Shown: positions 600-46,219 of the stretch, piece after piece
Position numbering within the stretch: position 1 is the stretch's first letter
Layout: every line of letters starts with the position of its first letter
Assembly: GCA_009103225.1 (NCBI GenBank)
Contig: RHPI01000810.1
Coordinates: 1,496,190 to 1,560,189, forward strand
Source: Chlorokybus atmophyticus
Lineage: Eukaryota > Plantae > Mesostigma and Chlorokybus algae
Reading direction: 5' to 3'
DNA length: 64,000 nucleotides
Position numbers and translations under genes: made by a program
The notes under the pieces: generated by a model
Database searches by the model: none
What the model was told of the DNA's origin: nothing
The model's input: only the letters and a program-made list of their open reading frames with translations

Positions 600-820
600 G
601 CGGGTGGGACGACCAGCCTTGGTCCTAGTGGTTGGACCGCGTGCTGAACCAGTGCTGCCCTGGCTCATAGACCGCGGGGCACGCGACCAGCCCTGGTTCG
701 GTGAATCGGACCATATCGGCGGGCTCCGGGGCCGGACCAGTCGCGGCACCGGTACGCTGCAGCGTACCGGACGTGGTCTGCGCGCCGCCTCCGCCTGGTC
801 CGCGCGTAAAAACCCCTGTG
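600..820. repeat. Terminal segment of a non-autonomous DNA-transposon-like element ending AAAAACCCCTGTG; second copy at 6290-6563
   Basis: Alignable by eye to 6290-6563 (e.g. ccagtgctgccctggct, gaccagtcgcggcac, cgtacc(a/g)gacgtggtct, taaaaa(c/g)ccctgtg). Similarity stops at the same base in both copies, where retroelement coding sequence resumes. Confidence 0.6.
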
Positions 821-1705: not shown

Positions 1706-2400
1706 TACAGTCGCCGGTACCTAACTATTAGGTACCGGTTAGTTACTTGTCAGTTAGGTTAAGTCCCTTTTGCTTGACTAATGGGTATCCTTACAAGTAC
1801 CTGTCAGTTGGTCCTTTCATGCAGACAATCGTCGATTGATGGTAACGGCCGTTATGCTCAGGCCCCTGTATCGAGAACAACGACAGTAAAACTGAGTCTC
1901 CTTAAACCCACGATCGTCTTATATACTTAGTCGCCGTCATTGGTAACATTTTGCGACGACATCACCTTCACGCCCAAGGGCGGTCGTCGTCCGACCTCCA
2001 AGCTATTGCAGATTTGTGCAATGGGTCGCTGAGAGTTGGGAGAAGCTCAACCCCGACATCATACGCAAAGCTTAAAACGTCGGGGATCAGCATTGCATTG
2101 GCTGGCTCTGAGATGATGACATCATTGAGTCTCCGGAAGACGATGAGAAGTTGGTCGGGACGGACGACTGACCTCTTTAACAACATGAGGAGATTGAGCT
2201 TCGTTATGCGGAGCTTGCAGCACGGATGGCCTCGACTAAGGCTGGTTGTGATGTCGGGGAGGCTGCGGTTGAGGCTAATGACGATGAGGGGAACACTCAC
2301 AGCGAGGGAGAGAATGAGGTGGTGCAGGAAGAGGGAAATGATATTGTAGTCATTGATGAGTGATGTTGATAGAATGAATTTTGGACTGAATAGAATGAAT
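1706..2400 (+). mobile_element. Decayed pogo/Tc1-mariner (DDE_1-type) DNA transposon remnant
   Basis: Starts TACAGTCG. Frameshifted translation of 1950-2150 reads FTPKGGRRPTSKLLQIC/QWVAESWEKLNPDIIRKA*..GISIALAGSE.DD, the typical pogo-family C-terminus (W..I....I..SFK.CGIS..LDGSEDD), followed by an acidic tail. Confidence 0.65.
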
Positions 2401-2563: not shown

Positions 2564-3076
<513 letters not shown>

Positions 3077-9500: not shown

Positions 9501-10643
9501 GTCCTTGCTCTTGAGGGCTTGCTGCCGCATCTTAGAGTGGAACTTGATGATGAACTCGTCAAGTGAGGTGATGCCAGGGCGTCCGGAGCGTAGGGAGTTG
9601 GTTGAGCTGGAAGGCTTCATCTCCTCGTCGTCACCGTCCGACGGTGGTGGAGATGCTCGCTGTCGAGGAGTGGAGTGAGAGGAGGTGAAGCCGGAGACGG
9701 GGCGTGAGCCTCTGCTGCTACGGTAATCGCTCCCTTCACTTGCGCGCTCGTAGGTAAGGTTGGAGGTTGGGCTCCAGCTGCTGAGGTTCCCTTCTTCTAT
9801 TGGCGAGAAAGGGGTGGGCCTGCTCATACAGCTGATGGGATGGTGAAAGTGGATGAAGGGTAGAGTGTTTGTGCTCTACAATGGGATCTCCAATGCTGCT
9901 ATCACCCAACACACTAGCGCTTGTGCGCGCTATGCGATGACAGTGACAACAATGCACAGCGATGTGTACAACTACAGATTGCGATGCTGATGTGTAGCCT
10001 GCAACTACACTCACTTGAGCAAAGAGGGTGACACTGTGAGTCAACAAGCCACTACTATAGGTAGCGCTACTTACACAGTTCTTTGCATGAGTGGCAGAGA
10101 GATTACACTGTTAAGTGAGGTGAATGAGCAAGCAACACGTAGATGCTATGCCCTGACTGATGCCAACAAGCACACCGCAACCAAGTACACCAAGCTCACA
10201 ACAAGGACAAGCACAGTGCACACGAGCATGCACAGGCTCTCACATGGTGAGGGGATTCTTGGGACTTGGGACGGCGTGTTTCGTAGTTCAAGTCGCTTTA
10301 CAAGCTCTTAGCTTTCTCACTCACAGTGTCACCAGCTAATCCGGTGAACACTGTGCCTACTTATACAAGTCAACTCATGACTGTTCAGAACATAAGCTAA
10401 CGGTCATATCGAGGCTATTTCCACAAGAAAACCCCACTCGATATAGAACCCAACTTATAACTGAACTCACAACTGAACAACTACGCGCGTTGCCTATGTA
10501 GGCTATGGTCATGAGCTACTCTAGAGACATGACCTAGCTACTGGTCAGTGACGCGCGCGGGTCGCCATGCTGGTAAGCCGGGCGAGGGTCTCGCTGTAGG
10601 CATGCCCGATGAAGACTGACATGCCCGGGTGATAGGCATGACA
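6564..10643 (-). mobile_element. Retroelement copy A: upstream region plus gag-like ORF with CCHC zinc knuckle and Asn/Gly-rich tail (Ty3/Gypsy- or DIRS-like), frameshifted and truncated before the protease
   Basis: ORFs 9827-8856, 8824-8162 (VCDYCHKTGHLETVC knuckle), 8097-7540 and 7536-6564. The upstream 9860-10640 region is the reverse complement of 57050-57860 and 54370-54680. Confidence 0.75.
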
Positions 10644-13474
<2,831 letters not shown>

Positions 13475-16070: not shown

Positions 16071-16521
16071 TATTGCCTTAGGAGGTACACTTATTACCTT
16101 GTACTTCGGATTTGCTGCCCATAAGATAGACATAGTACTTTGGTGCTAAGATACATTGTTCGTAAAGCAAACACTGCAGCGAGCAATTTGCAGTTTATAA
16201 ACATGATAATTCAAATTAACAAGCACGACGCACACGGGGCGCGCTCGAACAACTGCCAATCGCGAGTATGTTAAAGAAGGTGACATGGTGTGGGTTTGCA
16301 CCAAATCTTGAGGTGTGAAGGTTGGTGAGAAGCTCTTCCCAAACTACAAGTGGTGCCCTCATTGCCTGTTGTAGATCTCTCGTTGGCAGAGATAATGCAG
16401 TAGCGGTAGTCAGCGACTTATATGTACATAGCAGTTGTAAATCATACTGTCTGCTGTTGCAGTACCTGTGTCTGCTTCAAGTATCATGTTTCCCAGTGTC
16501 ATGTGTGCACATAACAGTTAC

Positions 16522-16522
<1 letters not shown>

Positions 16523-16617
<95 letters not shown>
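16523..16617. repeat. Poly-C run ending in N (probable gap-fill artefact)
   Basis: 95-nt homopolymer followed by a single N at 16618. Confidence 0.85.
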
Positions 16618-18224: not shown

Positions 18225-19615
18225 TGTCGCTGGTCAAATGCCCTTGAAAACACTGCTGTGCACTAGCTGTTTATGCACACTCAGTTCTTATGCATGCCAA
18301 CTCATGCCAGATTAGTGCAGTACTGTAACAAACATTTATAGCTTTTTAACTTTTGCAAGATGATGCATGACTCAGCAGTATACAGTTATGTGACCTAATG
18401 GCCCGCATGCTATACTTGACTAACGGTGACCCGGGATAAGGTCTGACCCTAGCAGGTGCAAGACCCAGCAACATGTGGCGGTGCCATAACCAGGCGGACA
18501 CCACACACAGTGGATGGGGGCCAAGCTGTTCTGGCGCCCTGTCAAGTCCTGTCCATTTGGTCGTTAATGCTGCTGGTGGCTGGGTCCGGGGTCTAACTGG
18601 TGCTCGTCTACACACTGCAGGTGGTACACCTGCCATGACTACATACCACGCCTTGCTACCTCTCCGTTGGTCTTGAGGGTCTCTAGCGATTACCTCGGGT
18701 ACATATGCTTTTGCGGAGTTTTGCTTTATGCAACTCTCTTGTGTTTTATGTAATCAGCCCTGGACTCTGGTTGAGCCGTTGGTTTTTCCAGGAAGCTAAT
18801 GATCCCCTTGCTGGGACCGGCCTGGGGCAGGTCACCCAATGCCACTGCATTTCCGTTTGCATGCTTGATGTATGGCTGCCAGCATGCGCATGCTATAACC
18901 GGCCAAGTAGAGTTGTAGCGGTTGGGTGTGGTTTTAGCGTAGTGTTGAGTTTACAAGTTACCATCCCGCCATCCTACCCCGGCACCAATATGCCAAACCA
19001 GGACAACAGGAGTGAGCACAAAAAGCGCATCCTTCACGTGAACTACTGGAAGCTGCCAATGCTCGACAAAATATGATCCAAGGCTTTACGGTTTGCACCA
19101 ACATCTGTAGAGGATGCATTGCATGTGGTTGATTCTGTTCGTGTGATGTTTTCAACTACTGGTAGTAAAAGGTGTTATGTTGGACTAACGCAGAAGTCAG
19201 CATTTCACAGATGGAAACAACACGGACAAGCGGCAACGAGGAGGAAACCCACAGCGGTTCAAAAAGCCATGTTGTCTGTGGGTTTGCAGTGCAGGTCTAC
19301 TATCCCCGTTAAACATGTGCCGCCGTGCAAGAATGATAGAGTTAACATATTGTGGTACTGCAGGGCAAGGGGGAGAGAATGTGAGTGGATATAAATTCTA
19401 CGCTCTCACCAACCCATGGGCTACAATACAGAACACAAGGCTTGCAAGAGGTCACGCCCACCTCATAAACGTGCACATATGGCTGTGTGAGGGGGTGTAT
19501 CAACAGTTGGTCAAGCATATTTGGCAACTGGTTGGCGCATGCATCGCAATATGTTTTCCCAGCCGGCCGACTAAATATTGGCAACGGCCGTGCACCTGAG
19601 GACGCTAATTTAGAC
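18225..19615 (+). mobile_element. 5' part of a Penelope-like element (Naiad/Chlamys type): pseudo-LTR plus N-terminal GIY-YIG endonuclease
   Basis: 18225-18770 is a diverged direct repeat of 36639-37270. Translation at 19119-19460 gives VRVMFSTTGSKRCYVGLTQKSAFHRWKQH...ECEWI/KFYALTNP/GYN (GIY-YIG core with frameshifts). Confidence 0.7.
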
Positions 19616-19727
19616 TGTCGTGGCTCAGGCCACCTGTAATCTTGATACAGGGACCTAATAGTAACTTTCGTTACTGTAAGGCCCTTTTTGTTACAATGTA
19701 GTCTTTAACAGTTGACTTTGCCTAACT

Positions 19728-19990
19728 AACAGGCGCCTGTTAGTTGCCTAGTAGGCCTTAACAGGTGACTTTATAGAATAAACAGGCACCTGTTAGTCAC
19801 ACACCAGGCCTTAACAAATGACTTTGTGTGCGCGTAATTTACAGGCAACTGTTAGTTACACATCAGGCCTTGTTAGGTGACTACAACTAATCAACGGGCA
19901 CAAGTTACACATCAGTCTTACCTAGGTGACTCCGCCTATGTGACAGGCACCTGCAGGTTACACACCAGTCCAGCGCAGGCGACTAAGCCT
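19728..19990. repeat. Five ~55-bp subterminal tandem repeats (aCAGGCACCTGTTAGTtACACAcCAGgCcTt..aGGTGACT)
   Basis: Units at ~19728, 19781, 19840, 19892 and 19942; each has a short palindromic core, CAGGCaCCTG. Confidence 0.75.
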
Positions 19991-20364
19991 AATTCACAAG
20001 CACCAACTAGATAATTATCGACAAAATAAGGCATTCTTTAACAACTGAAGGTGACCAATGCCTAACTGTCGTTATATGTATTTGCATAGCTTGACTACAC
20101 GCGACTGTCACTGACTTCCAGCATTGTTATGCGCCTGTGCTGTGTACATGTACCTGAAATGTGTACAGTGTCTCTCAGTCACTTGCCAAGGCTTGTAGTT
20201 TGATTATGTGACTCGAATGCAGTTCTGTTGTATATCATAGGGATTCAAGTATTGATGTGCATGAGCATAATGACGATTGACTGAGCTGGTTTAAGATGCA
20301 CAACACTCAGTCACAAGAGCCTTGTAGCTATGTACACTACCAGCTAAACGGACTACCAACTGCG

Positions 20365-22192
20365 CTACAGCTCCTCTCCATCATCGCTGGTCTCGTCATT
20401 ACGGAACAAAGCACCACGCGCTGGGGCCTGTGGAGGAGACGCCGAAGCTTGCTCTTCCTCCTCAAACGGTTGTGCCAGCCAATTAAATGCCGCTTCTGCC
20501 TGAGCGAGCGGGTCATGAGCTGCTGTCTCTTGCGGCCGGCGCCGATTGGGATCTTTCATGTATTTGACACAAGATGCAGTGCGGCGTTTCACAAGGGTGA
20601 ATGGCTGGAGGGCTGCGTACCGTAGCCTCATCTCCCGCTTCATTGACATGATCATGGTGTTGATTTCGCTGAGGTACTCTTCATGTGTGTCTATGCTGGC
20701 AGCTAGGAGAGGGTCTCCATCTTTGCCCTTTAGGATGCGCTCCACCTGCGTAGTTTACAGGCATGTCTTAGTGGCATCGAAAGCCACTATTCACTGCAAC
20801 GCGTCTGCAAGCCTGTAGTTTGGGGCTACAGCGTTCCTGAATTGCTAATGATGGAGTTCAGAGTGCTCACCGTAAGCAACAGGTATGCGAGGTGGTTGAC
20901 TGTCAGCTGCCGGCGACCAGGTGTAGTGACGGCGTAAGACCAGCATTGCACGATCATTTGCCAGATTATGGGATTGCCCCATTCATGGATGTATCTCCTC
21001 CGCTCCGGGTCTGCAGTGTCGGTCACCTCAAATCTCCGCCATGACTTGTCTGCGACAGTCATACCGACAAGGCATTAGTCACGAAATAGATAGTTCAAGT
21101 TGAGCCTGCACCAGGCTAGAATAGTGCCTGTGACTTACTTTGGAGCGCGTTGCGCATCTGGGCTTTTTGGGTCTCGGGGTCCATTAGGGCGTCGATGTGC
21201 CTGATTGAATCGGTTACAATAGGCGAGATGAGTACGTGTGTATGGAGGCTGAGTAAGAAGGCAGTGTTGCATAGCAGACATGGTGGTGAGGGACCCAACT
21301 CACTTGCGCTTGTTGCTGTTAAACAGTGTCCACTTGTACTCCTTCTCAAGGACATGCTTGATCTTGGTGACGTTCTCAGACCGGACCTGCGTAGCTTTCT
21401 TCAGGGCGACACTCCAGTGGAAGGGGCACTCCTTGGGAGTCCAGTACACCTCATAGAACTTGGCCGCATCGGCCTCGTCGTCATGGTCGAAGCCAACTAC
21501 CTGTCACGGGCAGGTTGGTCAGTGTCACGGTGCAGTGCGGTCATGAAGCATTCACAGCACCTGACACATGACGTTACGAATAGTGTCCTCCTTGGGATAA
21601 ACGTGGCTCTCTACCCAGTGGCCGTTTATGATTTCAACGACGGCATCTCGCAAATGCTGTCCACAGAAGAACAATCCGTTACACACATACACACAGTGTC
21701 ACAGTGTCACACAGTGCTTACCTCGTTGCCAATCTTCCACTTGCTTGGGGAAGGGTTGCTGACGGCCGAGGTTGCCACGTCACGGCCAAATGCGTTTGGG
21801 TTGGGGGTTCCAATCGACCCTCTGCAAGCACAACCACATGAGTCATGCTGCCAGCCATGAAAGATGCAACCCTCACAGTTGCAAAAGAAGAACAACGTGC
21901 ACAGTGTATCCAGAACGCATGCAGTGAGTCACTGTGCTAGTCATGATAGAAGCAAGCATCCAAGTTAGAAGTTGAGCAAGAAGCAACGTGCACAGTGCAT
22001 CAAGAACGCATGCAGTCTAGCTTGCCCTTGCGACTGCGGTGTCAGGTGGAGTTGTTGTGATGTGCTGGGCGTTAGCGCGGGGTCTTGCTGCGATTGGTTG
22101 GCGACGGTTGCCTGGTTGAACACTGGGGGCAATGTGGACAACTGGCGCCGACCTCCACGACGAGGTGCACTTACGGATGGACCACGAGGCAT
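20365..22192 (-). CDS. Multi-exon (~7-8 exons) cargo gene of unknown function
   Basis: In-frame exons bounded by GT-AG: ..KWKIGNE|HLRDAVVEIINGHWVESHVYPKEDTIRNVMCQ|VVGFDHDDEADAAKFYEVYW...VLEKEYK|HIDALMDPE...|..WRRFEVTD...LLLT|..ERILKGKDG...DDGEEL*. Confidence 0.65.
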
Positions 22193-22725
22193 CTCTCCAA
22201 CTGATAGTCGGGTGCCGCCTGTTTAGCTGTAAGTGGCGCTGCCGCCTCCAACGCTGCCGCCGCCGGTTGGCCCGCCCGAATGTATGAGGCGCGAAAACGA
22301 AAATGAGGCGGTTTTGAACGTCTAGAGTCCCGCACTAGAGTCGCACTTGTAGTGCGTCCTTGCTCCTATGGTTGATGGTACGACTTATGCATTCGTGCCA
22401 TGCATGCTTCGTACAACCATTGTTACCAATGGTTGTGTCGTAACATTTATGGTACGACAGAGGCATCTCTCGTCCAACCCCAGCGATTGCCGTACAATGG
22501 CTCTGTCGTACCATCCATGGTACGACAGAGGCATTGCTCGATCAGCCCAAATGGGAGTTAGCATGCACTCACCCAAACACGCTTCATTGATGGCCGGATG
22601 ATGGCACGCAGGGGCACCAGGTCGATGACGGGTCGAATGTCAGGCTTGATGGGCCTGGGTTCGACTAGGAGGCGGAGGACCAGGAGTCGGAGGAGGCGGC
22701 GGCGGCGGCGGCGGCGTGGCACATC

Positions 22726-25700
22726 TTGCGAGAAGTTGTGGTCGTAAGAGTTCAAGCAGCGAAGCCAGCTACTACCGGTCGCCACGTCATGGATCATGGC
22801 AGGCGTCAGCAATGGGGCTGTCCAACATGCATCACCAACATTGGACAAACCAGCAGGCAAGCCATTAAAGACCATCTTCACACAGAGAGCTGCTTGGTGG
22901 CTCGCTTTCTGCAACAGGGAGTGGATCAGGAGCTGCAGTCCTTGGAGCCCCTTGTCAGAACCATGCGGGACCAGTTGCGGCTGTGGGAACAAGCACAAAG
23001 GAATGCAGAGGTACGCTCAACAGTCACATGCATTTCCTTGCAAGAGCAATTTGTTTTTTAGCGCAGTCCATGTGATATATGTAGCGTGGCTGCAGGCCTC
23101 CACTATTCACCCATACCCACCCTACAGTCAAGCCGACATTGCGGAAGCAAGAGCAGATAGACAGAGCTGGGCGGCGGTATGTTGTTGCCAATCTCGCTGT
23201 GCATGTTGACTGCAATGTCGGCTCCAATGCATGCCTACCTTTCCATGCTAGGATGTGCGTGAGCGTGCGAAGTCGCGCGCGCGTGCCGAACGAAGTAGGC
23301 TGGGTTTGAGCACAGGAGCGCGTGGCCATTCGTCCGGCATTCAACCAATAGTGCATCAACCAGCAATGACGCAGTCCATGCAATCATTCGTGCATCAACC
23401 AGCAATGCCGCAGGTGACTGTTCGAAGCAACCAACTGATGACGGTGTGACGCAGTTGACTATTGCAATTGCAGTGTCGCAAGCATGCAGCTAACCCACAT
23501 GTGATTGGTTGACAGCACCACAGTGCACTAAGTCCTGTTGGAGCTCCTATGCAAGCCTGGATTCAATCCCATCAACTGGTCCTTCAATCCCACTTGCTGA
23601 TGGGCGCGGCGGCAATGCGGCATCAGTTTAACATGCATGTTGGCCTGTTGAATCCCGACATGTCCATTGGGGCAGTGGCGCATGATGTGCCCATGGCTCA
23701 AGAGCTCCGTGACGAGTCTGCCATTGAGGGTGGCGGGGAGAGTGCAGCCAATACCACCTTGTCAGCCCCCATGGCTTCCCCTGCTCCATGCAGCCCACGG
23801 GCCATTGAGGTAAGTCGCTGTCTTTTATGCTCGTGCCTTGGTAACAATGCGTCAGGCACTGCATAAGCTTATATTCGTCCTTTGCAACATTGTGAGCCAT
23901 CTTATCCTGGGTCCTGTATACAGCCCCCCTTGCTGCATGCACAAGTGGTCTCACCTGCAGCTCCTGCTCCCCTCCCAGCCAGAGCGCAACCACCTTCCGC
24001 GGCACCAGTCCTTCGTGCACTGCCATCTCCTCCACGAGCAGCACCGGTGATTGCGGGGCAACAATCCTTCTTGCCGCCACCGGCGAGACCACAGCACAAT
24101 GCAACAACCGATGTGGCTTCTGCACCTACCTTACCCCACCCGCTGCAAGTTGAAGCCGGCAGTCTGCCCCAAACTCAGGTACTTTATCAGTCACTGTGAC
24201 TCTTGCCGTCCATAGTTGGGCACACCATGTGAGTGCTGTATGCGCATGCAGCAGGGGTCACCACCTGCCAGCGAGTCATCAGAGGAGCTGGCCGCAACCC
24301 GCCGGCCATCAGTCATGCTAGGTGGCCAGCTCGCCTCATGGGACCACTTCAATGCGCCAACGGATGGTAACTGCTTCTACCATTGTGTATTTCGCGCCAG
24401 GCCATCCATAGCGCAAAGTGTCCTGGATGATCACAAGTGCCCCAGCTCGAGCAGATTTTGGGCCATGCTAGACACCATGGACAACGACGGCAGGGGGCAC
24501 ACTCTCCGCAAAATCACCGCCAAGGCTGTCGATGCAGGCGTGGCGAGCAGAATCCTAGACGTCTGCAGGGCCACTGGTGCCGCGGGAGAGATGGCGCAGT
24601 ATTACGACAAACTGCCTGCGACCATGTTGGCTGATATCAACTGCAACATTGACCTAGCCATGGCCAAGGTGCGACAGATCGTGCAGAGAAAAGATGTGTC
24701 CGTCGAGCACCTGCAGATGACCATGTTTGCCAACAAGCTGGGCTTGTTGATTGGCTGCGTGACCGTTCAGCGCGAGCATGGGGAGTGGGTGCCACGGCCC
24801 GGCAGCGCAGTTTGGGTTGGAAATAAAGAAGCCCCCAACTCAGTCCTGGTGGTGGGCAACACTGCTCCTGATGAGCCAGAAGCACACTTTTGGCTCCTCA
24901 AGCCTGCAAGCATCGAACAGTGGTCGTGGCCTATGCATGAAGTGCCATCGGAGGTAACACACCTGATCGGAGAGTGGCGGCATGGCGTTGCCAATTCCCC
25001 GCTACCACCGGCTGTGACCCAGAGTGCTGCGCCAACTCAGGCCTCGCCTTCGTGTGCTAGGCAAGAAGTAGCCGAGTGTTCTGCACATCCTGCCTCCCCT
25101 CAACCACAGCCACATGCTCGCAATCCCAATTCAGCACCCTCCCTTCCTGCCGCGGAGACTCACTTGCCACCGCACTCTGACCATCCGGAGGCNTCTCCAT
25201 CAAGAAGCAGCTGTAGCTCGCCTTCGTGTGCTAGGCAAGAAGTAGCCGAGTGTTCTGCACATCTTGCCTCCCCTCGACCACAGCCACATGCTCGCAATCC
25301 CAATTCAGCACCCTCCCTTCCTGCCGCGGAGACTCACTTGCCACCGCACTCTGACCATCCGGAGGCATCTCCATCAAGAAGCAGCTGTAGCTCGCCCTCT
25401 CCCTCTAAGCTTGCCACATTGATCCCAGCCTGTCTTGTTGGTAAAGAGATTGATCGAGGTGTCCTGAAAGCTGCGCTGAAAGACAAAGGCTTCATGCTCG
25501 ACCTCATGAAGCAACATGAGGTCGTGGAGGAACGGGAGGCAACCAACAAGCGCAAGGCTGTGGAGCAAGAAGATAACGCCTTACCTCCTCTGAGTGACAG
25601 TGCCACGGAGAGCGCCTGCCAGGATGTGCAGGGTGACAAAAAAAAAAAGAAGAAGGTTGTTGGAACAAAGGACGCTGACAGGACCAAAAAAGGAAAGGTG

Positions 25701-26808
25701 AGGCATCGTTACAACATTAGAAGAAGCACAGCGCCTTGAAGCCTCACTGGGGCTGACTGTGTGTCCTGAGTAGGCACAGGCGGGTTTACAGCGTCAAGTG
25801 GCTGCTCAGCATCGTCCAGAGAGACAGCCGGTGCGGCACGAGCTGCCTAAGCTCAAAGCACCGACGCGCAGACGCTTTGGGGGGCTGACTCGTAGTGCAA
25901 AGGAGTTGATCACCCTACAGTACGCCCAAGACGCGCTGCATCACCGCATGCGGCATGCCTCGAGGTGGGTGACGAAAGTTTGCAATAAGTGGGAGCAAAC
26001 GCGGAGAATGCGGTCTAAACAGACCTCTGGGGATTGGCCGTGGTTGGAACCCATACACGATATGGCCATCCGTAGTACGTTGTTGCCCCTCGCCGTCCTC
26101 GATATGATGGTGTTGTTGCTGCCGCAGCACCCCGGCAATGTGCAAGAGCTATCTGCGGAGCAGAACTTCGACCTGCTGCAGCAGATGTACCTGTCGATGT
26201 CGACTAATGCGGGTCGAGATGTGTGCCACTACCTGAGCAAACATACTGGGTGGCAAGTAAAACCATTCGAGCTGTACTTGGCATGCTTTGGCTGGCAGTG
26301 GCTGTATGTCATACGGCACGTCGAGCTGATTCTGTGGAAGCTCGAAGAAAATGACGATGCGGGGGAGTACACGAGTGACGACAGCCATGTCGAGGGCCTG
26401 GATGAACGCATGCTGGACGAGACCACCAAGACCAGCAGGTGGTGTATGGCGGCAGATGGGCGTCAGGTGATCGAGCAGGCAGTGGAGCGTTATGCTGCGC
26501 CATTCAGATGGGAGTCGCTACGCCTGCGACGCGATAACAGAGTTTGGTGGCAGAGGCAGCTTGCACACCCGCGTGCACCATGTGTGCTGATTTGTCGCAT
26601 TGAAGAGCCACCCCCCCCAGCGGATGGGGAGACGCCCTGTTGCAAGAAAGCGATGTGCCATGTCTGCATCATAGCACATCAGAAGACTGTGGCAAATAAA
26701 TCAAAGAATCTACAAGCGTGTCCATTCTGCAAGCAACCTCACCCGTTTTGGTCGCCACGCCTGATGCAAGACGCCAACGTGTCGGCGGTGTTTTGGCCCC
26801 AGCCTTGA
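22726..26808 (+). CDS. Predicted spliced cargo gene: Zn-finger-like N-terminus, Pro-rich linker, OTU-type cysteine protease, C-terminal RING-like finger (5' end uncertain)
   Basis: CPTC...HLHTESC at ~22816. OTU motifs NAPTDGNCFYHCV (~24350) and AHFWLL (~24880). A phase-0 intron at 25698-25791 (GTGAGG...CTGAC...TTTACAG) joins ORF 24216-25739 to ORF 25798-26808, which ends CVLIC...TPCCKKAMCHVC...CPFCKQ. Confidence 0.65.
25043..25390 (+). repeat. Two tandem 174-bp (58-aa) near-identical units within the OTU gene
   Basis: ctcgccttcgtgtgctaggcaagaag starts at 25043 and 25217; there is an N at 25194. Confidence 0.85.
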
Positions 26809-27200
26809 TGCCAATTGTGCATGTATTGTAGTTTTGTGTTGGCTTCCTGTGAACCATGTGGGTACATGTATAGTTGCAGCATGGTGCATGGTGCACCAGA
26901 GATCTGCTGTTGTTAGAAGCATTGGCTGTACATGTGTATGATGACTGCCCGGCGCATGAGTCAGTGCATGGCTTGCATACCTCGCTGGTTTAAAGCGTGG
27001 TTGACAACAACAAACTCGGACAGCGCTCTGGGTTCCATGGCATGACATCACAGTATTACTCTACGATCGTGATAGTATGCGAGTATCCTTGTACTGTAGT
27101 ACCATTAACAGATAGAGTACCATTCATGTTGATGTAGTACCATGCATGGTACTGCAATAGCGTATAAGGTACAGTCGTGCTTCACTTGAAGTTTGACCCA

Positions 27201-27248
27201 TTTAGGGTTCGTAAGCTGGCAACCCTAAATTGATGCCCATACCCTAAA
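27201..27248. promoter_or_regulatory. Three TTTAGGG/CCCTAAA telomere-repeat (telo-box-like) motifs, two forming a 9-bp inverted repeat, upstream of the methyltransferase
   Basis: TTTAGGGTT at 27201-27209, AACCCTAAA at 27221-27229 and ACCCTAAA at 27241-27248; ATG at 27292. Confidence 0.55.
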
Positions 27249-27291
27249 GTCTCGCTCAGTTTGTGGGCAGCCGTGCCGATTCCTATTTTGC

Positions 27292-29020
27292 ATGATGTCG
27301 GCGGCAGCAGTTGAATCACCCTCACCTAGGAGACCATGCTTGGTGTGCCCACAATGCAATGCGTACGTATGTGCCAATGGCCGTAGGCAGCAAATGCGAG
27401 CACACTTGACCGAATGCCAGCGAGTGCAGACAGTGTGCCACGGTTTTAGTGCTGCTTGCTGGCATCACACCACACACAATGTCGACGTGTTTGGCTGCCG
27501 CCTCGGCCAAGTGCTGTGCAAGGAACCCGAGTTTTTCCATTGCGTGCAGTGCGTGTGCGAATCGTGCTCGCGCTCATGCTTCGAGTGGCGAGGGGAACCC
27601 ATGCGCTTCTTCACATGGACAACACCGGGACATGTGGTTAGTGGACAGGTGGTGGATGCTGTGGAGGTAATCCACAAGAGTGGACCGCGACGTATCACTG
27701 CATGTTATGTTGGGCGTATGCTTATTTCATGCATGTTGAAGCTGTTGTCGCATTCAGAGCAGTCTTGCACGGTGTGGGCGTGGGCAGTTCCATCCCCTGG
27801 CCGCTGTAGAGGAGGCAGACCATCGACCGTTGGACAGCGCACTGCATCGGCTGCGGAACGCAGTTAAGTTGGGATGCGAGCAGCTGATCGGTGTGAGTGT
27901 CATGGTGCATTGGCCGCTGGATGGGGAATGGTATGCGGGCGTTGTGGAATCATTCAAGCAAGCGTCAGGTCAGCATCGCTTCGTGGCGTGCGAGATTGAG
28001 GACGCATCATATATGCATGGTGCAATGGAAAATGTCTTTGCAGGGCAGCACCGTATAGTATTCGATGACGGTGATCGACCACAAACCATCAACTTCAAAG
28101 GGCACAACGTATTCGCGTACACATCAGTTGACGGGGCACGCCATGTTCTGCGCGCCGGAGGGGAGAACGTCAGTCGCAAAGTAAGCCCGGACGGCATCAT
28201 TGTTAGTCCCTGGCCAGCACCACGGCCAGCCTTGACCACATACACGCCATTTGACAACAAGCTGGGACGCACACGCAGACCAAGGGCACTCGACCTATTC
28301 TGCGGCGGTGGCGGTGCCAGTGTCGGTCTATACCACGCAGGCTTTGACGTGACCGGGATGGACATAAGTCCCTCCTCTGAGTACCCGCTGCCCTTCATAC
28401 ACCGCGATGTATGCACCCTGAGTGCAGGAGAGCTGAGCGAGTACGAGCTCATCTGGGCCAGTCCACCATGCCAGGCCTATTCAGGTGCTATCCCGGCACC
28501 TCAACGGGCGGCACATGGCACATCCTGGAGACACCAGGATATGATACCGCTCGTCCGACGTCTGCTGCTTGCAAGCCAGGTCAAGTTTGTGATTGAGAAT
28601 GTGCCAGGAGCAGCTTCCTCATTCAGACCCAATCTGTCCCTTTGTGGCACGATGTTTGGCCTATCAACTTTCCGACACCGTCTGTTTGAGACACAGCCAG
28701 TGGTAGCTACCCCACCAGCACGCTGCTCGCACGCGGGCAAGGCAGTTGGACTGCTATCGCCGCACCTGTCCGCTAGCGCGAAGAAGACAATCGTGACATC
28801 AAACGCGCCACAGCAGATGTACCCGGTCTATGGCCTTCCAAGCACCAGGGGCGGCATTGCTGCGTGGCAAACAGCGCTGGGAGTGCCATGGATGACCTCG
28901 GCCGTTTTCATAGCGAATGCAGTTCCTCCCGCAATGGCGGAGTGCATAGGGCGTCTCATGCTTGAAACAATGGATATGCGCTGTGACTACCCTCCTATGT
29001 CATTGAACTATGAGGCTTGA
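27292..29020 (+). CDS. Cys-rich Zn-finger + Tudor + C5 cytosine DNA methyltransferase (3 exons)
   Basis: Predicted introns ~27667-27759 and 27969-28043. Tudor-like LIGVSVMVHWPLDGEWYAGVVESFKQASG|QHRIVFDDGD. MTase motifs: I ALDLFCGGGG, IV IWASPPCQ, VI FVIENV, VIII FRHRLF, X IANAVPPAMAECIG. No internal stops. Confidence 0.9.
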
Positions 29021-29163
29021 GTGTGGTGCACTGTATTGATGCTTAATGCCACACGGCGGACTGATTGTTGAATGTTGCATGGATCATTCGATTGTGGTGA
29101 CAGTTGTGCAGTGACAGCTGCCCGGTATTGTACACGTCCACATGCAAAAGTCTTAGCATACGA

Positions 29164-32100
29164 TTAGCAATGCCTAACTGACTGATATGCTCCAAACCGA
29201 GAGTAGTGAGACAAGTACATGTGTGACGTGGAAGTGCAGTGAACGTTCACCCAATACTTGCCCTCTTGTACACGGGCGCTGTCCTTGTCAAACATGGGGA
29301 GCAGCTGGACAATGCCTTTCACTTGCTCCAGAGTCACGACATCGAGATGTGGACCGCCTCGACGCTTTTCCCATTCCAGAGCGATGCACTTTGTGTCGCT
29401 CGTCACATCCAGCTTCGTGTACCAGCGGACAAACACGACCTCCTTCCACACGCGCTCGCCGCTACCACCCCACACCACCACGCGCAGAAAAAGGAGTGCC
29501 TGAGCCCACCACGTCACGTTCACACCGTCCTCATCACCTTCCAACTCAAGTGTAGAGAACCAAGGCCGCCCATGGAACATCCCAGTTGCGCGCGCCATGC
29601 TGACTCCTGATGTCATGTACACCGCTGCGCCTCCGTTCACCACGCGAACAGCACGCCACCCGTCGGCCAAGTCCAGTTGTTCCCTCCTCAACCAGCTGTC
29701 CAGGGTGGCAGGCAGCTTGTCGGCAAATGGAGTCTTCAAAGCGACTTGGCGGCTACGCGCAGATCCGCTCCAGTACGGGCTGCACTCCCTCCTTGTCAGC
29801 ACATCCATCCGTAGCAACTTGTCCGTCTTCTCCATGACATTACAGCACTGCTGCCGCGCCTGCGCCATGACCGAGCGCATCTCGGGATCCACGACCATGC
29901 CATCCTCTCTCACATATTCCGCACAGCTCCATGCCTTCAGGATACGTGCCTGGTAGTCCCGGTTGTTGCCACCACGCGCCCACCGTTTGATATTTTGGGC
30001 GTGCGTCTGCTCCATGCGGTTGGCGCTGAACCAATCTGGGTGTCCACTGCTGACAATTGCCGGCCCAAAATGAGTGAGCTGATGCATCTTCTCGATCTTC
30101 CAACCTGACTTCTGTGCAGAATATGACGACAGTAGCGGATGCAACACTGCAGCTTTGAAGGCAGCCAGCTCGTTGTCGGCTGTGGTCAGGGTCTCTCTTG
30201 TGTGTTCATGCGCCTTCAGCAACTTCTTGTTCCACTGGGCAAGCGATGCGGCAGCAATGGTGAAGAAATCGTTGCCCTCACTGTCGAGCAGCAAACCGTC
30301 TGCGAGGACCGGCAGCAGCTGCAGCACCGCCACTTTCTCCACCACCTGAAAGGAGTGGTCGGACAGGAAGAAATCTACTGTGCTTGTGGGTGCCTTGAAG
30401 TGCGAAACCCGCAGAGTCGCCTTGCATGCATTCAGCCTGTGCACATCTGCTCGTGAGCACGTGTTGTTGGCTTTTGTGTTCAACACAAAAGCAACACCAA
30501 AGACGTGCCTGGCCTGCAGAATCTGTCTCGTGGATGGACGCATTCGTTCCTTCGCGGCGTCGTACACAGCAGCAAGCAGGTGGTCAATGATGCCTCCCAG
30601 CACATGCATTGCGTCAGGGGCAAGACGAGAGTAGCAGTCAGCTCCCGGCACCCGCGACTGTCGCCAACCCCACAGTGCATTCTGTTGCCAAACCACATTG
30701 CCTGGTTTCACGGAAAGCCATTCATCCTCACGAATGCCGATAATTTGACCATTACCTCCTCGACATGCATGGAGTGCTGCTCTTTGAAAGCCTTGGCTGT
30801 CTGGCGTGCATTCCTAACACCGCTATGCAGGTCCGCCCGCAGCTGACGTATTGCTGGTGTGTAGAAGGCCTCGGTTCTCAATTCCCGGTCCTCATCCATC
30901 TCCAACAGATCTGATTTGGTGACGAGACAAACATCGCAAGGATGTCGTGTTTGGTTGCCCGACACAGTGCGTGCGAGTGTGGCAGTCTCCTACAACACGA
31001 CAAACTCAGATGTTCTACTGACAACATCCTCCATGCACTGTTTGCTGGCAGGCTGCATCCGGTTACAACCATTCATGCCCACTACCTGCAAATCGCTGAT
31101 GTAGTTGGCAAGCGCGGGAAACACACGACGCTCGATGCCATTCGGGTCGATGAGCTGCAGACCTTCCCAACTCGCCCGCTTCACATCCCCTAACACTACA
31201 TTCAAAGCGTCATGAAAAATCTCACGTTTCCGAATGGAGAACGATTCCTTGCCCTGCGCCCAGGTGGGATGCCCGGCCACTGCGTGAACCACCGGCAGAA
31301 GCGCTATCATAACAACCCCCATGTTGCTAGCATACATGTCCCAACTGTAGTTGGCAAGCGATGCCATCAGAGGGTAGCCAGAGCGCTTGCCCGCGCTGTC
31401 CAGCGTGGTCTTGTCACTGTACAGAATGGCAGGCGCCAAGTAGGACGCTTCCCCCACCTCTCTCCTCAAATCCACCTCCACATCCTTCCACCAATCGCCC
31501 GTGGAAGGATGGCCAAAGCTGTGCTCGTCACCAGTGTACTGGAGATTGAAGCCATTGGCGGCATGTGGATTGCCATACAACCGCGCGAGCCATACCTGCT
31601 CCGACCAAGAGCATTACTTACTATGCTGGCCTCAGAATAGATACTGCATCGATACTGCATTAGGTACTGCATTTCACAGACCTTGGCCGGCATATATGTG
31701 ACGCAGATGTCCTGATCCTCAGGGTCTCCAGGCTTGCGCAGGTCAGCCGTCACGTAGTTCTGATACGGCAGCACACTCGCATGTGCATATGTGACATGGC
31801 TCTGATGGTTGAAGCACATGCACCGCACACCGTGAACACACCTCAGACTGAGAGAAAGCAATCGTGGTCCGGAGGTAGCTGGCCGCATGCACACCGGTCT
31901 CCCACTGGAGCTCTTCCGTCAGGAAGTGTGCATTTCGGATGCACTTGATGATCCGCCCCATGTCGGAGGCCGACAGGCCTTGGCCGTTGTTGCACTGCAC
32001 GAATGCCACTGCAAGAGCATGCTCCGAGCCATACCACCTGGATTCCGACGCGTGCGAAGGGACGCCTCCACTTCCATGTTGGCGTGCCACAGGTTTCTCA

Positions 32101-32366
32101 GGCACACGCACACATCGAAAGCCCTCGTTCACTTCCTCCTCCTCCTGTTGCTGCTGTGCGTGTGTCTCCTGGAGGAATCCTTCAGCATCAAGCATGTGAG
32201 CATCCTGGATCGAACTCCCCGGTTCAACATGACCCGCATCGTACTGTAATGGACGCTGGCCGACATACAGCTTGATCTGCTTGCACACCCTGCTGCTAAT
32301 AATGTGCATGTAGACCGAGCTGCGTGTGGCGAAGCGCATGTGGCAATACGGACAAAGGACTCCCAT
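29164..32366 (-). CDS. Plavaka-family transposase with N-terminal C2H2-like zinc finger, multi-exon
   Basis: CPYC...HIISSRVC finger; AILYSDKTTLD...GYPLMASLAN; ISDLQ|ETATLA...HPCDVCLV (intron 30990-31085); APDAMHVLGG; KIEKMHQLTHFGPAIVSSG...NRMEQTHAQNIKRWARGGN. Intron 30682-30755 links ORFs 30708-30965 and 29164-30711. Confidence 0.85.
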
Positions 32367-32433
32367 ATCTCACTACTAACGTCGACACAGGTGTCGCCAA
32401 TGTAACCTGCATCATATCCAGCAACACGCACAC

Positions 32434-32465
<32 letters not shown>

Positions 32466-33169
32466 GCCACCGCTACCGCTACCCTTGCATGCCAGAGGCG
32501 GGAAACTTGGCCGCCATTCACTGGCTCCGTCGTACCATTATAATGGTACGATCGAGCCATTGCACGTCCAGGGTGAGTCTCTGGATATTTTTATATACAT
32601 ATATATTCTGATTGAACCGTTTCAATGGTACGAAGATGCCTTTGCCAAAAGGTATAGGCATTGTACAAAGGTACCATTGAAATGGTACCTTTGTACAATG
32701 GCAATGGCAGTTCGTACCATTGACAACTCTGGCAATGTCAGTCCCCCTGCGCATGAAAACACCATTGATAGCTCCGCCAAGCTATGCCCTTACAGGGGCG
32801 TGATGCCGAGGGTATGTGGCGTTTGGAAGATCGTTGGCGGCGCTGCCAGGGGCGTAGTGGGCATTGTGGTCGAGGTCCGGGATGAATTCCATGTTCGCAC
32901 AGGGCGGGCAGGGTGCCGGAGGGGTGTCCTCGGTGTCAAACCCCACCAAGACTACCAAGGGCACATCCAATGACAACAGTGACTCGGGCGATATCTTACA
33001 GGGCTCCCCCTCCGAGTGGGCAAAGGCACACCACAATACTGCCTCTAAGAAAATCCGACCCACCAGCAGCTGCGACCACGGCGACATGATTGAAGGGACC
33101 AAACAAGACTGGCATAACCAAGGTGGGTTACGATGCACTGTCAATGCCACATGCTAGGGTTCTTTTATC

Positions 33170-33737
33170 TTGCACATGCACAGCCTCAAGTATCTTGCAC
33201 TTGACATACATTGTCAATACGACATGCACACCCTCATGCACAACCTCCAGTGTCATGCACATGAACAGCATGACCAATCTCGCAAATGCACAGCCTATTT
33301 CTACTTGCGGGAGCTCACAAGTCGCAAAAGAGAAGCTGCGGAGTCAAACGAACGGGTAATCTATGACCTAGTTTAATGTTTCCAGCGGTAATTAAGCAGT
33401 ATGCTTGCAGATTGCCATGTTGGTCAGAGTGAACCAAGAGCAGCGCGGCAGGCTGACTGTCTGCCTGGCGGAGTGCAACAAAGCGGAAGACGAGGTAAGC
33501 GTGTGTATGCTGATGGGCTAGTCCTCTGGCAGCACGCCACTCTTACAGCATTACCAAATGCAGGTGGTCACTCTCAAAGCGACCATCAAGCGCATGCGCG
33601 TGCACGGCGAGGCGCTGACATTCAAGCTGAAGGACGAAGTAGCCGCTGTACTGTCAGCGAGCGAGGCAGCGGATGAAGATGACTCCGGCGTTGAAGCAGA
33701 AGACTCGTCGGAGGAGGAACAGGAGGAGGGGGTTTGA
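33170..33737 (+). CDS. Small 3-exon coiled-coil/acidic-tail cargo gene divergent from the transposase (start uncertain)
   Basis: ..YFYLRELTSRKREAAESNER|IAMLVRVNQEQRGRLTVCLAECNKAEDE|VVTLKATIKRMRVHGEAL...EEEQEEGV* with GT-AG junctions; conserved in the copy at 12365-12944. Confidence 0.55.
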
Positions 33738-34296
33738 GGAGGAGTTCTTAGGCAGGCACCACGGGTTGACAAGCTGCGCATGAGTCCGACAGCTAGACTC
33801 AATGTTATAGGATAGTTTCATGCGCAAGTCGGCTGCTCAGTTGTAAGTGGACATACTCTCACCACTGCCCGTACATTGTATATATTGTGGGCTTTTAGGT
33901 GCAAGACCAAACAATCAGTCTTAGGTTTGAACAAGCTGCATGGCATGGTAGTGTTGGCTTACGGCAAGAATTGCCAACTTTTGTCAAATGGCAAGGGTCA
34001 CATATTAACAGCAGTGTAACGGCAAAGAAACTGCCGGCTATTGCTGTCAGCTGTCCGTAACTACCGGTCAACGGCCGTCTGTGCACATCGACCAAAGGGT
34101 AAATGGTTGACAACTCTCGGCCGGTTAGTGCCACTGACAGCCACTTTCGGCCCGCGGCCGTCTGCGTCAGTCCACTTAAGCCAACGGCAAACCCAACAGT
34201 CCAAAAGTAATATTTCAGGCAGCAACAGGCAGGCTCAGGCAGGCTCAGGCACCAGTCAGTCCCTCAGTCCTTAGTCAGTCACCGTGTAAAATCCGC

Positions 34297-37270
34297 GACG
34301 TGTTTGCATATCGTGATATGCAATATGACCGCAGAATAAGACATCTAGCATGATCCATGCAACGTGGCACCTTTCACAGTATACATTTGCGTGCACACAT
34401 ACAAGCTGAGGATTTTATATCGTATGCTTAATTGTTAGACCAAATCTCCAGCAGCGCATTTGTACATTCGGCTAGCACAGGCGGAAGCACTGCGAGGAGT
34501 CTTGAAATTGGCGGTAAAAGCAAACTGCGCATGTACCACGGGCAGGTGCCAACCAACACTAAGTGATACGGAGTGAGTTTCCAAGTGCTGTTCTGTTGAA
34601 TTTGCCTCACATCATACAGTCACCTGCTGTAAAACAACATCCGCCACCTTCTGTACTAACTACTTGGAGACCGCCGTTGATTTCCTTGAAATACAGGAAT
34701 ACAATGCTAGGTAGCATGCAATTGCACGCGCATTGCCACACAAACAACCATGGCAAAATATCTGGGGGTATTGGGTGCACAATGTGTTTGTGAAAACATG
34801 CCGTATGCTAAGTATGTCCATCCACAATTAGGTCACATTCAAAGATGTCACATGTGAATATGCCTTAGTGCACGCACAGAGCAAACAAGCTTTGCTAATA
34901 GCGGGTTCTACGTATCGGCAACCAGCTGCGACCTGTGTACAATTGCATGTGGCTGCTTTTACTAAAGGGATTTGGGATTATGCTGACAACTGGGCTGAGC
35001 TGCAGGGCTGTGACAACATGGCAGCATGGGCCACTTCTGTGTTGGAGTCAGTAAAAGCAGCGGCGCTGAAGCTCAATAAAGATGCCTTGTCTGCGCACAA
35101 GCCAGCACCAACCTACACCACCTCGGACAAACATTGGGCGAGGTCGTTGCATGACGCATTTGTTTTCGTAAAAGTGGATAAGTGTAATGGGATCGTTGCA
35201 GTGTTGTGCAAACAACTGTACTTGACGTTGTTGCATGATGATCTGAACACGCCAACCTAGGAAGTTGTGGGTGAGAGCGCAGCGTAGCTTTTAGCAAGGC
35301 GCAAAATCTTCCGTAATTTCCGGATACAAGCCAACACAGCATGCAGTAGAAAGTCTGCCCCACCTCTACATTACAGTTGCACAAGATGCCACATATGGCA
35401 AGGTATATTGCGGCTGGCAATAAATTTTTGACGAATGGCAGTGCATGGCTAGCCCGTACTTACAAGTTTCTACTGCCAGTCTTTGACCAAATATGGTTGA
35501 GCGATGTGGCAGTGCCGAGACTACAGAGCAGATGGGTGCTACATGACTCGTAGGGGGTCCAAAACATGCTGCAACTGGAACACAACACAAGCTCTAGTAC
35601 AGATATGTTGTTGCTAGTAAACATGCTCTCGTATGACTTCACAAATCCGTACACCAACATACACCATGCAGACTTGCTCTCGTGCATGTCTGACTTGGTG
35701 CGAGACTCTTTAAAATGGTTACAGTTTAAGACAGGGGAGCAACTGTGTTTTAAGTGTTGTGTATAAAGGGTATTTTGAATCATCAGTGGGTGCGCCACAT
35801 GGCAGGCCAGAGACAGCAATAACACCAAGTTCTTTACAGCTGCATGCTTGACAGAGTTGTTGCAATACTTGCTGAGCAACCTCTACGTGACTATTGCACA
35901 GACAGACTACACAAGCAGGCTATTAGAATCCCAATGGGTAACTGCGCGGGGGTCTACTTAGCAAACTTCTACCTCGGGTTGAAGGAGCTCAGGTTTTTGC
36001 GGGCCCTCGAGGCCATGGGTTGCATGGAGGTTCTGCGTAGATGGTGTTGTGCACTGGTACGCTATGTGGATGACATTCCGCTCTTGGACATACCGGCATT
36101 TAAGGAAGTAATGTACACAGGAGAGTCAGTGTTGGCAGGTGGCCTATATCCGAAGAAAACACTAACACTGACACGGTTGGCTGCTGGAACTGTAATTGAT
36201 GTTTTTAATATGACTTTAATTCAAACAGCTGACATTGGCTTGTGCTCCCGAGTATACTGCAAACTAAATGACAACCAGTTTCACACCATACCAAGGAGAC
36301 GAGGACCACACCCTGCAACGGACATTGCCAAATCAGCTAAGCTTGGTGTCATTGTCTCAGAATGCATTAGATTATTGAAATTGTGCACATCGTTTACACT
36401 TTTTGGCAGAGATGGTGGCTCTACTGCATGCTATGCAACAGGAAGGCTATGCTAAGCATGCTGTGCTAAAAGAACTACGCAGGTGGATGTACCGCCAGCA
36501 AGAAATGGTTTATGACGGGACGTACATGTACTTGTGCCACCTGGTCTACACCAAGCGCAACACTACACCACAACATGTAGGTGAGGTAAGTGCGGAGAGG
36601 TAAGCAGTGTGGGAAGCAGTACATCTGCCCACATGCATGTCGCTGGTCAAATGCCCTTGGTAACTGTTGTGTACTAGCTAATCATGTACATTCAGTTCTT
36701 ATGCATGCCAACTCGTGCTACATCAGTGCAGTACTGTAACAGACATTCATGGCTTTTTGAATTTTGCAAGATGAGGCATGACTCTGCATTACACGATCAT
36801 GTGTTATAATGGCCTGCACGCCATACTTGACAAACTAACGGTGAACGGGGATAAGGTCTGATCATAACAGGTGTAAGACCCAGCAACATGTGGCGGCGCC
36901 ATAACCAAGCGGACACCACACACAGTGGATGGGGGCTAAGCTGTTCAGGCGTCATGTCAATTCCTGTCCGTTGGGTCGTAAATGCTGCTGGTGGATGGGC
37001 CTCGGGTTTAACTTGTGCTCCTCTACACACTGCAGGTGGTACACCTGCTGCCATGACTACATACCACGGCTTGCTACCTCTCCGTTGGTCTTGAGGGTCT
37101 CTAGCGTCTAGTAGTTGTGGGTTCTATTGAATGAGGTGTAGTAGGTAACTCTATCTTGGCCTTCACTTATTTGCTTGTTTGCTAGCTTGCACTTCATGTG
37201 TATGCATGGTTACCTCGGGTACATTTGCTTTTACGGAATTTTGCTATATGCAACTCTTGTGTGTTATGTA
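34297..37270 (+). mobile_element. 3' part of the Penelope-like element: CxC linker, reverse transcriptase (decayed) and 3' pseudo-LTR
   Basis: VFAYRDMQYDRR (34300); CVCENMPY CxC (34783-34791); LIAGSTYRQP; LHDAFVFVKVDK; QLHKMPHMARYIAAG; SYDFTNPYTNIHH (motif A); IPMGNCAGVYLANFYL (motif B); RYVDDI (motif C). 36639-37270 repeats 18225-18770. Confidence 0.85.
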
Positions 37271-38529: not shown

Positions 38530-42732
<4,203 letters not shown>

Positions 42733-46192: not shown

Positions 46193-46219
46193 NNNNNNNN
46201 NNNNNNNNNNNNNNNNNNN
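46193..46219. other. Assembly gap (27 N) flanked by poly-C
   Basis: Direct reading. Confidence 0.95.

Follow-up and report, generated by a model that had tools for sequence, protein, structure and literature searches.

A window of 64,000 nucleotides from the alga Chlorokybus atmophyticus (assembly GCA_009103225.1, contig RHPI01000810.1, positions 1,496,190 to 1,560,189 of the forward strand) contains an apparently autonomous copy of a Plavaka transposon, the transposase of which is intact. Beside it lie a gene for a predicted Tudor domain-containing C5 cytosine DNA methyltransferase and an orphan open reading frame (ORF) of 838 amino acids (aa). The initial annotation treated positions 19616–34300 of this window, the whole stretch of DNA analysed here, as one giant Plavaka element that brings along its own epigenetic and ubiquitin toolkit. 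The window is eukaryotic in character, with a GC content of about 52%, long (GA)n arrays and many nested repeats, and a GC-richer block with long ORFs lies between 22 and 34 kb. The transposase, methyltransferase and 838-aa genes each have short spliceosomal introns.

A Plavaka transposase and one end of its element

The Plavaka transposase gene (29164–32366, minus strand) has five exons (31831–32366, 31682–31775, 31086–31598, 30756–30989 and 29164–30681), separated by GT-AG introns of 55, 83, 96 and 74 nt, and the five joined segments encode an uninterrupted protein of 964 aa. This model matches the Pfam family PF18759 in one stretch, with a score of 100.4 bits against a cut-off of 26.3 (E = 1.5e-28; profile positions 61–322 of 325); the single-exon ORF at 30990–31580 (minus strand) gives E = 5.7e-23. 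The first two introns are the least certain part of the exon model. The exon 2/3 junction falls at the same residue in an environmental locus (L002; ENA ERZ27253056, 552 bp), which encodes a 134-aa Plavaka fragment 69–70% identical to the window transposase. This fragment was the single match to the core ORF of the transposase in the protein database, and it indicates that a related eukaryote with this transposon lineage occurs in a public metagenome. The C-terminal ORF had no match in a search of 5.8 billion proteins, and transposase scans of metagenomes and viral contigs gave no match either; the source genome is apparently outside these collections. The intact, spliced Plavaka transposase of the initial annotation is thus borne out by the profile match over the whole five-exon model and by the junction kept in the environmental locus.

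The transposase has an N-terminal CPYC...H...C finger, and its catalytic region holds a C-x2-C pair (HPCDVC) and an H-x2-H pair (HSMH), the latter bordering on a predicted intron. They may be the counterparts of the Cys and His pairs published for this group of transposases, although the His spacing is shorter than the published one. The element is predicted to be a cut-and-paste DNA transposon of the Plavaka lineage, in the EnSpm/CACTA-related (CMCT) group, with its right end at 34300.

That end is defined by a second, truncated Plavaka copy (10644–13474, minus strand), which matches 31445–34300 with 95–97% identity. Both copies stop at ...GCGACG and the flanks past 34300 and 13474 are unrelated; therefore 34300 is a genuine element end, and the right terminus that the initial annotation had described as common to two copies stands. 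The right terminal region (34107–34300, the 5' end in transposase orientation), in which homology to copy 2 ends at ...CACCGTGTAAAATCCGCGACG, has a 10-bp tandem repeat at 34215–34251. Copy 2 is interrupted inside transposase exon 3, where it abuts an unrelated repeat at 10643. It is dead, since it has two premature stops and its codon changes are 16 non-synonymous to 4 synonymous, whereas copy 1 is open. Copy 2 appears to be decaying neutrally, and the substitutions between the copies show no strong concentration at CpG.

Two short ORFs, at 32785–33153 (minus strand) and 33522–33734 (plus strand), lie between the palindromes of the transposase promoter (described below) and the right terminus. 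Both have some coding potential and neither has a family match; one of them has a CPPC...H..H motif that is present in copy 2 too. In copy 2 a (TC)n array with N (11755–11989) replaces a 212-bp segment of copy 1 (32583–32794) that has two of the palindromes.

A gene for a Tudor-C5 methyltransferase

Converging on the transposase gene is a three-exon gene on the plus strand (27292–29020; exons 27292–27679, 27810–27968 and 28044–29020) for a protein of 507 aa, consisting of a Cys-rich N-terminus, a predicted Tudor domain and a C5 cytosine DNA methyltransferase. The stops of the two genes, at 29020 and 29164, are separated by 143 bp, and this gap has nothing resembling the known terminus. The C-terminal 250 aa make up a complete C5 cytosine methyltransferase with intact motifs I (DLFCGGGG), IV (PPCQ), VI (ENV), VIII (RHRLFE) and X (NAVPP). 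The match to PF00145 scores 25.6–26.4 bits against a cut-off of 22, a protein database search returned 3284 homologues, and the window enzyme agrees with a family alignment of 80 sequences at every one of its 14 invariant columns. Structure prediction, for which the unspliced ORF was the input, agrees with this assignment: the AlphaFold model has a predicted local distance difference test score (pLDDT) above 90 over residues 150–390, the catalytic domain, and Foldseek matched DNMT1, DNMT2 and DNMT3B with E down to 1.6e-8 and probability 1.00.

The Tudor domain matches PDB 7de9, and the E value of this match falls from 3.7e-4 to 1.7e-9 when a 75-nt intron (GTCAGC...TTGCAG) is taken out. The alignment of 47 residues crosses the splice junction and includes the segments W-P-x-D-x-x-Y-x-G-V-V-E-S and DDGD, so that intron and domain are both supported. 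The Tudor domains of 53BP1 were matched at E 0.002–0.05, and the Pfam family PTM_DIR17_Tudor reached 17.9 bits, below its cut-off of 27.2. The domain is of PDS5/RDM15/53BP1-like, plant type. PDB 7de9 is the Tudor domain of Arabidopsis RDM15 bound to an H3K4me1 peptide; RDM15 is a host protein that, unlike the Tudor-methyltransferase of the window, is not known to have a catalytic domain. Both the converging C5 methyltransferase and its Tudor domain had been proposed in the initial annotation and are upheld by these matches. The first 129 aa of the protein are Cys-rich and have no family match. The segment CFEWRGEPMRFFTWTTPGHVVSGQVVDAVE (27577–27679, residues ~96–125) is weakly like the CBX7 chromodomain (E = 1.2) and could be a second, degenerate histone-reader module preceding the Tudor domain.

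The best relatives of the methyltransferase are 35–48% identical, over the catalytic domain only, and comprise short phage or bacterial enzymes together with a group in which a methyl-CpG-binding domain (MBD) is inserted in the variable region. They lie in compact, intron-free contigs that have either a phage terminase or topoisomerase II, D5 primase-helicase, SNF2/RING genes and kinases, neighbourhoods that identify these contigs as phages and giant viruses. None of the database matches covers the Tudor part. The window enzyme falls outside the canonical plant and algal classes and, to judge from these relatives, is of a short viral or bacterial type.

An orphan gene upstream of the methyltransferase

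The 838-aa ORF occupies 24240–26808 on the plus strand (24216/24240–25697 joined to 25774–26808, with the splice junction read from the sequence). Its halves are in frame across a 76-nt GTGAGG...AG intron with the strong donor AAG/GTGAGG, and it contains an in-frame 174-bp tandem repeat (25043–25396; 58 aa). A single N at 25193, within this repeat, is probably an assembly uncertainty. The ORF is probably a real gene, because its codon usage and coding potential are like those of the transposase, and additional exons may lie 5' of it. It has no Pfam match, and when 1.84 billion representative proteins were searched exhaustively with HMMER, the sole return was a low-complexity match to its own 58-aa tandem repeat.

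The product had been predicted to be an OTU/RING protein and hence the ubiquitin-editing part of the toolkit. It does have an OTU-like PTDGNCFYHC motif, a downstream candidate His (EAHFW) and a degenerate RING-like C-terminus. A Pfam search found no OTU (PF02338) match at E up to 5, and RING (PF00097) stayed below its cut-off of 21 with 9.6 bits (E = 1.1). Visual inspection of the RING pattern shows Lys in place of His as the fourth ligand and a C1–C2 spacing of 3 instead of 2. Matches in the PDB were non-significant, both to the Cys loop of a viral OTU (E = 0.65) and to the TRIM30 RING (E = 0.18), and the single-sequence AlphaFold model was unusable (pLDDT 38.7). OTU and RING are motif-level guesses, unverified, and the protein has no assignable activity; a role as a cysteine protease or zinc finger would likewise be a guess from motifs. 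With no Pfam OTU, no homologue and only short motifs to set beside the RING score, the ubiquitin toolkit was not sustained.

Palindromes and finger motifs at three gene starts

Palindromes of ~44 nt that are built around GTACCAT-N(2-4)-ATGGTAC form a family with sites at 22437, 22505, 27137, 32532 and 32671. All four perfect cores of the 64-kb window are among these sites, which fall into three clusters upstream of gene starts, and 14 of the 17 half-sites in the window belong to these clusters or to copy 2. The other sites are retrieved by a 19-base pattern derived from a single site, where chance would give 0.01. In the folded palindromes the stems are 10–19 bp long, with z values of −6 to −9 in three of four; the weakest (27137) has z −2.5.

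Cluster 1 (22375–22548), which has two ~44-nt palindromes on GTCGTACCAT-NN-ATGGTACGAC and a half-site, is 244–365 bp upstream of an ATG at 22789. Cluster 2 (27099–27172), with GTACCATGCATGGTAC and half-sites, is 120–193 bp upstream of the methyltransferase ATG at 27292. Cluster 3 (32519–32723) has palindromes at 32519–32562, 32610–32640 and 32654–32705 and a half-site, and is 153–357 bp upstream of the transposase ATG at 32366 on the minus strand. The first palindrome of cluster 3 is kept in copy 2 (11691–11734), where the counterpart of the family is degraded; apart from this counterpart, the rest of the window is free of the family.

The ATG at 22789 opens a plus-strand ORF (22789–23058) that starts MDHGRRQQWGCPTC and has a coding-potential signal; it is either a separate gene or exon 1 of the 838-aa gene. 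Its product, the methyltransferase and the transposase all have an N-terminal finger of the form CPxC-x12-15-H-x3-6-C within their first 25 residues. The strict CPxC...H...C motif occurs 7 times in the six-frame translation of the window, and 3 of these occurrences open the three genes.

The left part of the region

A possible spliced gene lies at 20365–21503 on the minus strand, with coding-potential peaks at 20368–20754, 20829–21074 and 21303–21503. The ORFs in 19.6–24.2 kb have no family match and a modest coding-potential signal, so that the two unknown spliced genes proposed for the region find little support. A gene finder based on simple dynamic programming predicts too many introns upstream of 24216 and was not relied on there. 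Subterminal repeats had also been claimed on the left: a tandem repeat with a period of 53 bp does exist at 19698–19960 (2.4 clear copies at 19698–19826 with 75% matches, then degenerate), but it has no relation to the right end.

Position 19616 itself had been given as the left end of the element. The left end was sought by inverted repeats, by blastn-short of the last 400 bp, by 8-mer sharing and by comparing the final 25 nt, position by position, with the sequence for four candidate ends. All of these searches stayed at chance level, and 19616 was outside even the best chance matches. This position, for which neither an inverted repeat nor a target-site duplication nor a second copy was found, was rejected as an established left boundary.

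The remainder of the window

Retrotransposon sequences in the window include a frameshifted Copia element and remnants of retropepsin and gag. The Copia-type element spans 58166–63091, with long terminal repeats (LTRs) at 58166–58597 and 62660–63091 that are 89% identical, and retains Pol beta-barrel, gag-pre-integrase and integrase domains. It is nested in a larger repeat, the inverted other copy of which (8623–10643) is the repeat that truncates Plavaka copy 2. A retropepsin ORF (810–1721, plus strand; PF13650, E = 6.8e-8) terminates in LELFGGIGSG, which is like methyltransferase motif I, and breaks off ahead of a (GA)n array at 2564–3074. At the level of this motif only, it resembles the DNMT-bearing Gypsy elements of Klebsormidium nitens (PMC5890265).

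The (GA)n arrays, of 0.5–0.8 kb, are at 2564–3074 and 40806–41646. Probable assembly uncertainties are a ~100-nt poly-C run followed by N (16519–16617) and a 27-N gap after poly-C (46193–46219). A dispersed repeat of ~530–630 bp (18225–18752 and 36638–37270; 86% identical, same orientation) flanks the candidate element. These two copies were considered as LTRs, or as a tandem Penelope-like element, around the region, and this was rejected since the homology covers only ~530–630 bp. Pfam lends no support to the 'YVDD' and 'GIY-YIG-like' ORFs on the flanks, and neither an LTR-retrotransposon nor a Penelope-like structure was found there. An Rfam search of the window gave no match.

One mobile unit or neighbouring genes

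The palindromes, the fingers and the 143-bp tail-to-tail spacing suggest that at least the segment from 22.4 to 34.3 kb acts as one unit. The interior of the element most likely reaches left beyond the transposase to at least ~22.4 kb, carrying two accessory genes. The reading that we prefer, and to which we give somewhat better than an even chance, is of an autonomous Plavaka copy with an interior that includes the Tudor-methyltransferase and 838-aa genes and with the palindromes as common control sites. Neither accessory gene, the one for an enzyme of viral or bacterial type and the other an orphan, looks from its sequence like a conserved host gene. The published giant Plavakas with accessory genes for DNA and chromatin modification (see below) set a precedent, and the mobility of the family is supported by the second copy, with its common end and unrelated flanks. 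The mobile unit with an epigenetic toolkit of the initial annotation survives in so far as an autonomous-looking Plavaka adjoins an intact reader-writer gene; the ubiquitin part and the boundary at 19616 fall away.

Several observations weigh against such a unit. A single end of the element is defined and the left end is unplaced: neither a terminal inverted repeat nor a target-site duplication was found, and nothing from 13.5 to 29.3 kb matches the right end in inverted orientation. Published Plavaka termini are TGT..ACA or CATCA..TGATG (generally CA..TG), with target-site duplications of 2–3 bp, and the right end described above fits none of these terminal motifs. The cargo region is held by one copy only, as copy 2 ends within the transposase gene and is therefore uninformative on cargo. 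No second copy with cargo was found in the protein database, the metagenomes or the viral contigs, from which the source genome is apparently absent, and no Plavaka adjoining any relative of the methyltransferase was found. The window is a transposon nest, in which neighbours can be accidental, and the palindromes could be an ordinary host promoter element or small inserted hairpin repeats. Pairwise BLASTP between the finger regions at the N-termini of the three proteins gave no significant match, so that their likeness is at motif level only; since, moreover, the ATG at 22789 was selected after the motif was noticed, the likeness of the fingers across the three genes is suggestive rather than proven.

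It is conceivable that the genes are chance neighbours, the Plavaka consisting of the transposase and its 1.9-kb upstream arm, either truncated or ending just past the stop, and the other genes being lineage-specific genes of the host or belonging to another element. That no left terminus or inverted repeat was found, that copy 2 is silent on cargo, that the window is crowded with nested repeats and retrotransposon remains and that the co-occurrence of these genes is seen nowhere else are all in keeping with such an arrangement. The 143-bp gap, however, is hardly long enough for a terminus that has subterminal structure, and a rare palindrome precedes, and an N-terminal finger motif opens, all three genes. 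Genes of the host are also an awkward source for a short methyltransferase of viral or bacterial type, which belongs to no canonical plant or algal class, and for an 838-aa ORF without an orthologue among the 1.84 billion representatives. We consider a chance arrangement unlikely, while allowing it a sizeable minority share of the probability. Were the genes mere neighbours, an ordinary Plavaka copy would lie beside an unusual orphan Tudor-methyltransferase, which would still be relevant to the evolution of DNA methyltransferases. An endogenised giant-virus remnant or virus-derived island that brought in the methyltransferase and the orphan ORF, with the Plavaka inserted later, is quite improbable. 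It is made less likely by the spliceosomal introns of 75–130 nt in both accessory genes, which are like those of the transposase, and by a Tudor domain that is closest to a plant protein. Such an origin would account for the finding that the closest methyltransferase relatives are in contigs typical of giant viruses, and we also count in its favour that cysteine-protease-like and RING-like proteins are common in giant viruses. The identity to the viral enzymes is just 35–48%, however, the ORFs tested in 19.6–34.3 kb, mainly those of about 50 aa or more, have no viral hallmark domain (capsid, polymerase B, D5 primase or packaging ATPase), and GC content and CpG ratio are like those of the surroundings.

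If the autonomous Plavaka copy does include the two accessory genes, they would move together with the transposase. The ~44-nt palindromes would serve all of these genes as control or binding sites, to which the CPxC...H...C finger of each protein might attach, and the Tudor-methyltransferase would deposit 5-methylcytosine (5mC) where a particular histone methyl mark occurs. The element might then control the state of its chromatin, whether to damp its activity or to escape host silencing by imitating gene-body methylation. In its fullest form, this proposal has the element bring a de novo cytosine methyltransferase guided by a histone mark, and perhaps a ubiquitin-editing enzyme as well, to the DNA of the element itself, with an epigenetic state independent of the host. 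It would then be the first C5-methyltransferase cargo in a Plavaka and, to judge from the literature searched, in any green-lineage cut-and-paste transposon; in this form we regard the proposal as doubtful. Were the methyltransferase to travel with the transposase, its single Tudor domain and short catalytic part, together with a single palindrome, would offer a compact test system for transposon self-camouflage or self-restraint via DNA methylation.

Comparison with known systems

A close published parallel is in red algae. Giant Plavakas with three accessory genes (PAG1-3) dominate the genome of Bostrychia (Bostrychia moritziana) and occur also in Chondrus crispus; PAG2 is an N6/N4-type DNA methylase with a SET domain (PF01555, PF00856), and PAG3 is a ParB-like/2OG-oxygenase protein beside inverted-repeat arrays (bioRxiv 10.1101/2025.02.11.637652). 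Like the candidate element described here, these combine a Plavaka transposase, a length well above 10 kb and several accessory genes with products that work on DNA or chromatin. Their repeats of inverted symmetry adjoin an accessory gene and have been proposed to be bound by a protein that the element encodes, and the palindromes described here are similar in this respect. The cargo differs: the red-algal methylase is of N6/N4 type, whereas here a C5 methyltransferase with a Tudor domain is found together with an orphan ORF, and none of the PAG2 and PAG3 domains (PF01555, SET, ParB-like, 2OG oxygenase) was found in the ORFs tested in 19.6–34.3 kb. Full boundaries and copy number are established for the red-algal elements, whereas here the right end only is defined.

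Elsewhere, fungal Plavaka and KDZ transposons carry TET/JBP dioxygenases (PMC12730594). The PF18759 transposase and a cargo that belongs to the cytosine-methylation pathway are common to these fungal Plavakas and the element here, but the fungal cargo removes 5mC whereas the predicted cargo here would write it. In Amoebidium, giant repeats are flanked by Plavaka and their cargo is mainly tyrosine recombinases (PMC11244446), and Plavaka has been reported in green algae/chlorophytes and streptophyte algae (PMC13519894, bioRxiv 10.1101/2025.02.07.637104). These reports place Plavaka outside fungi and indicate that it can flank long arrays of extra genes; those from the green lineage do not describe an accessory methyltransferase. 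In the literature searched, no Plavaka or green-lineage cut-and-paste element with a Tudor-C5-methyltransferase was reported. The combination of genes had been thought undescribed, and this holds for the particular cargo; giant Plavakas with chromatin- or DNA-modifying genes are already published for red algae, fungi and Amoebidium.

Mobile elements with an intact C5 methyltransferase, as proposed here, are known among retrotransposons, namely SymbioLINE-Dnmt and SymbioDIRS-Dnmt3 of Symbiodinium and KnitGypsy-Dnmt3 of Klebsormidium nitens (PMC5890265). In SymbioDIRS-Dnmt3 and KnitGypsy-Dnmt3 the enzyme is part of a polyprotein and in SymbioLINE-Dnmt it is in ORF1, and two of the three are of Dnmt3 type. 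The window enzyme, by contrast, is encoded by a separate spliced gene beside a DDE transposase, and is of the short viral or bacterial type with a Tudor domain. A different likeness is with the giant-virus-like MBD C5 methyltransferases found among its relatives (P0002-P0008 and P0011; loci L003, L005 and L008), which have the QMYPVYG and C-terminal DYPP motifs in common with the window enzyme. They likewise couple a reader of a chromatin or DNA mark to a writer, in parallel to the Tudor fusion. In these enzymes, however, the MBD reader is within the enzyme, between motifs VIII and IX/X, whereas the Tudor domain of the window enzyme is N-terminal; and the genes of the giant-virus-like enzymes have no introns and lie among viral genes, whereas the window gene is spliced.

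Two routes by which mobile elements have entered the cytosine-methylation system are known: DNA transposons of fungi carry erasers (TET/JBP), and retrotransposons carry C5 writers, of Dnmt3 type and others. If the methyltransferase described here travels with the transposase, it would represent a third, in which a cut-and-paste element carries a reader fused to a writer, of viral ancestry.

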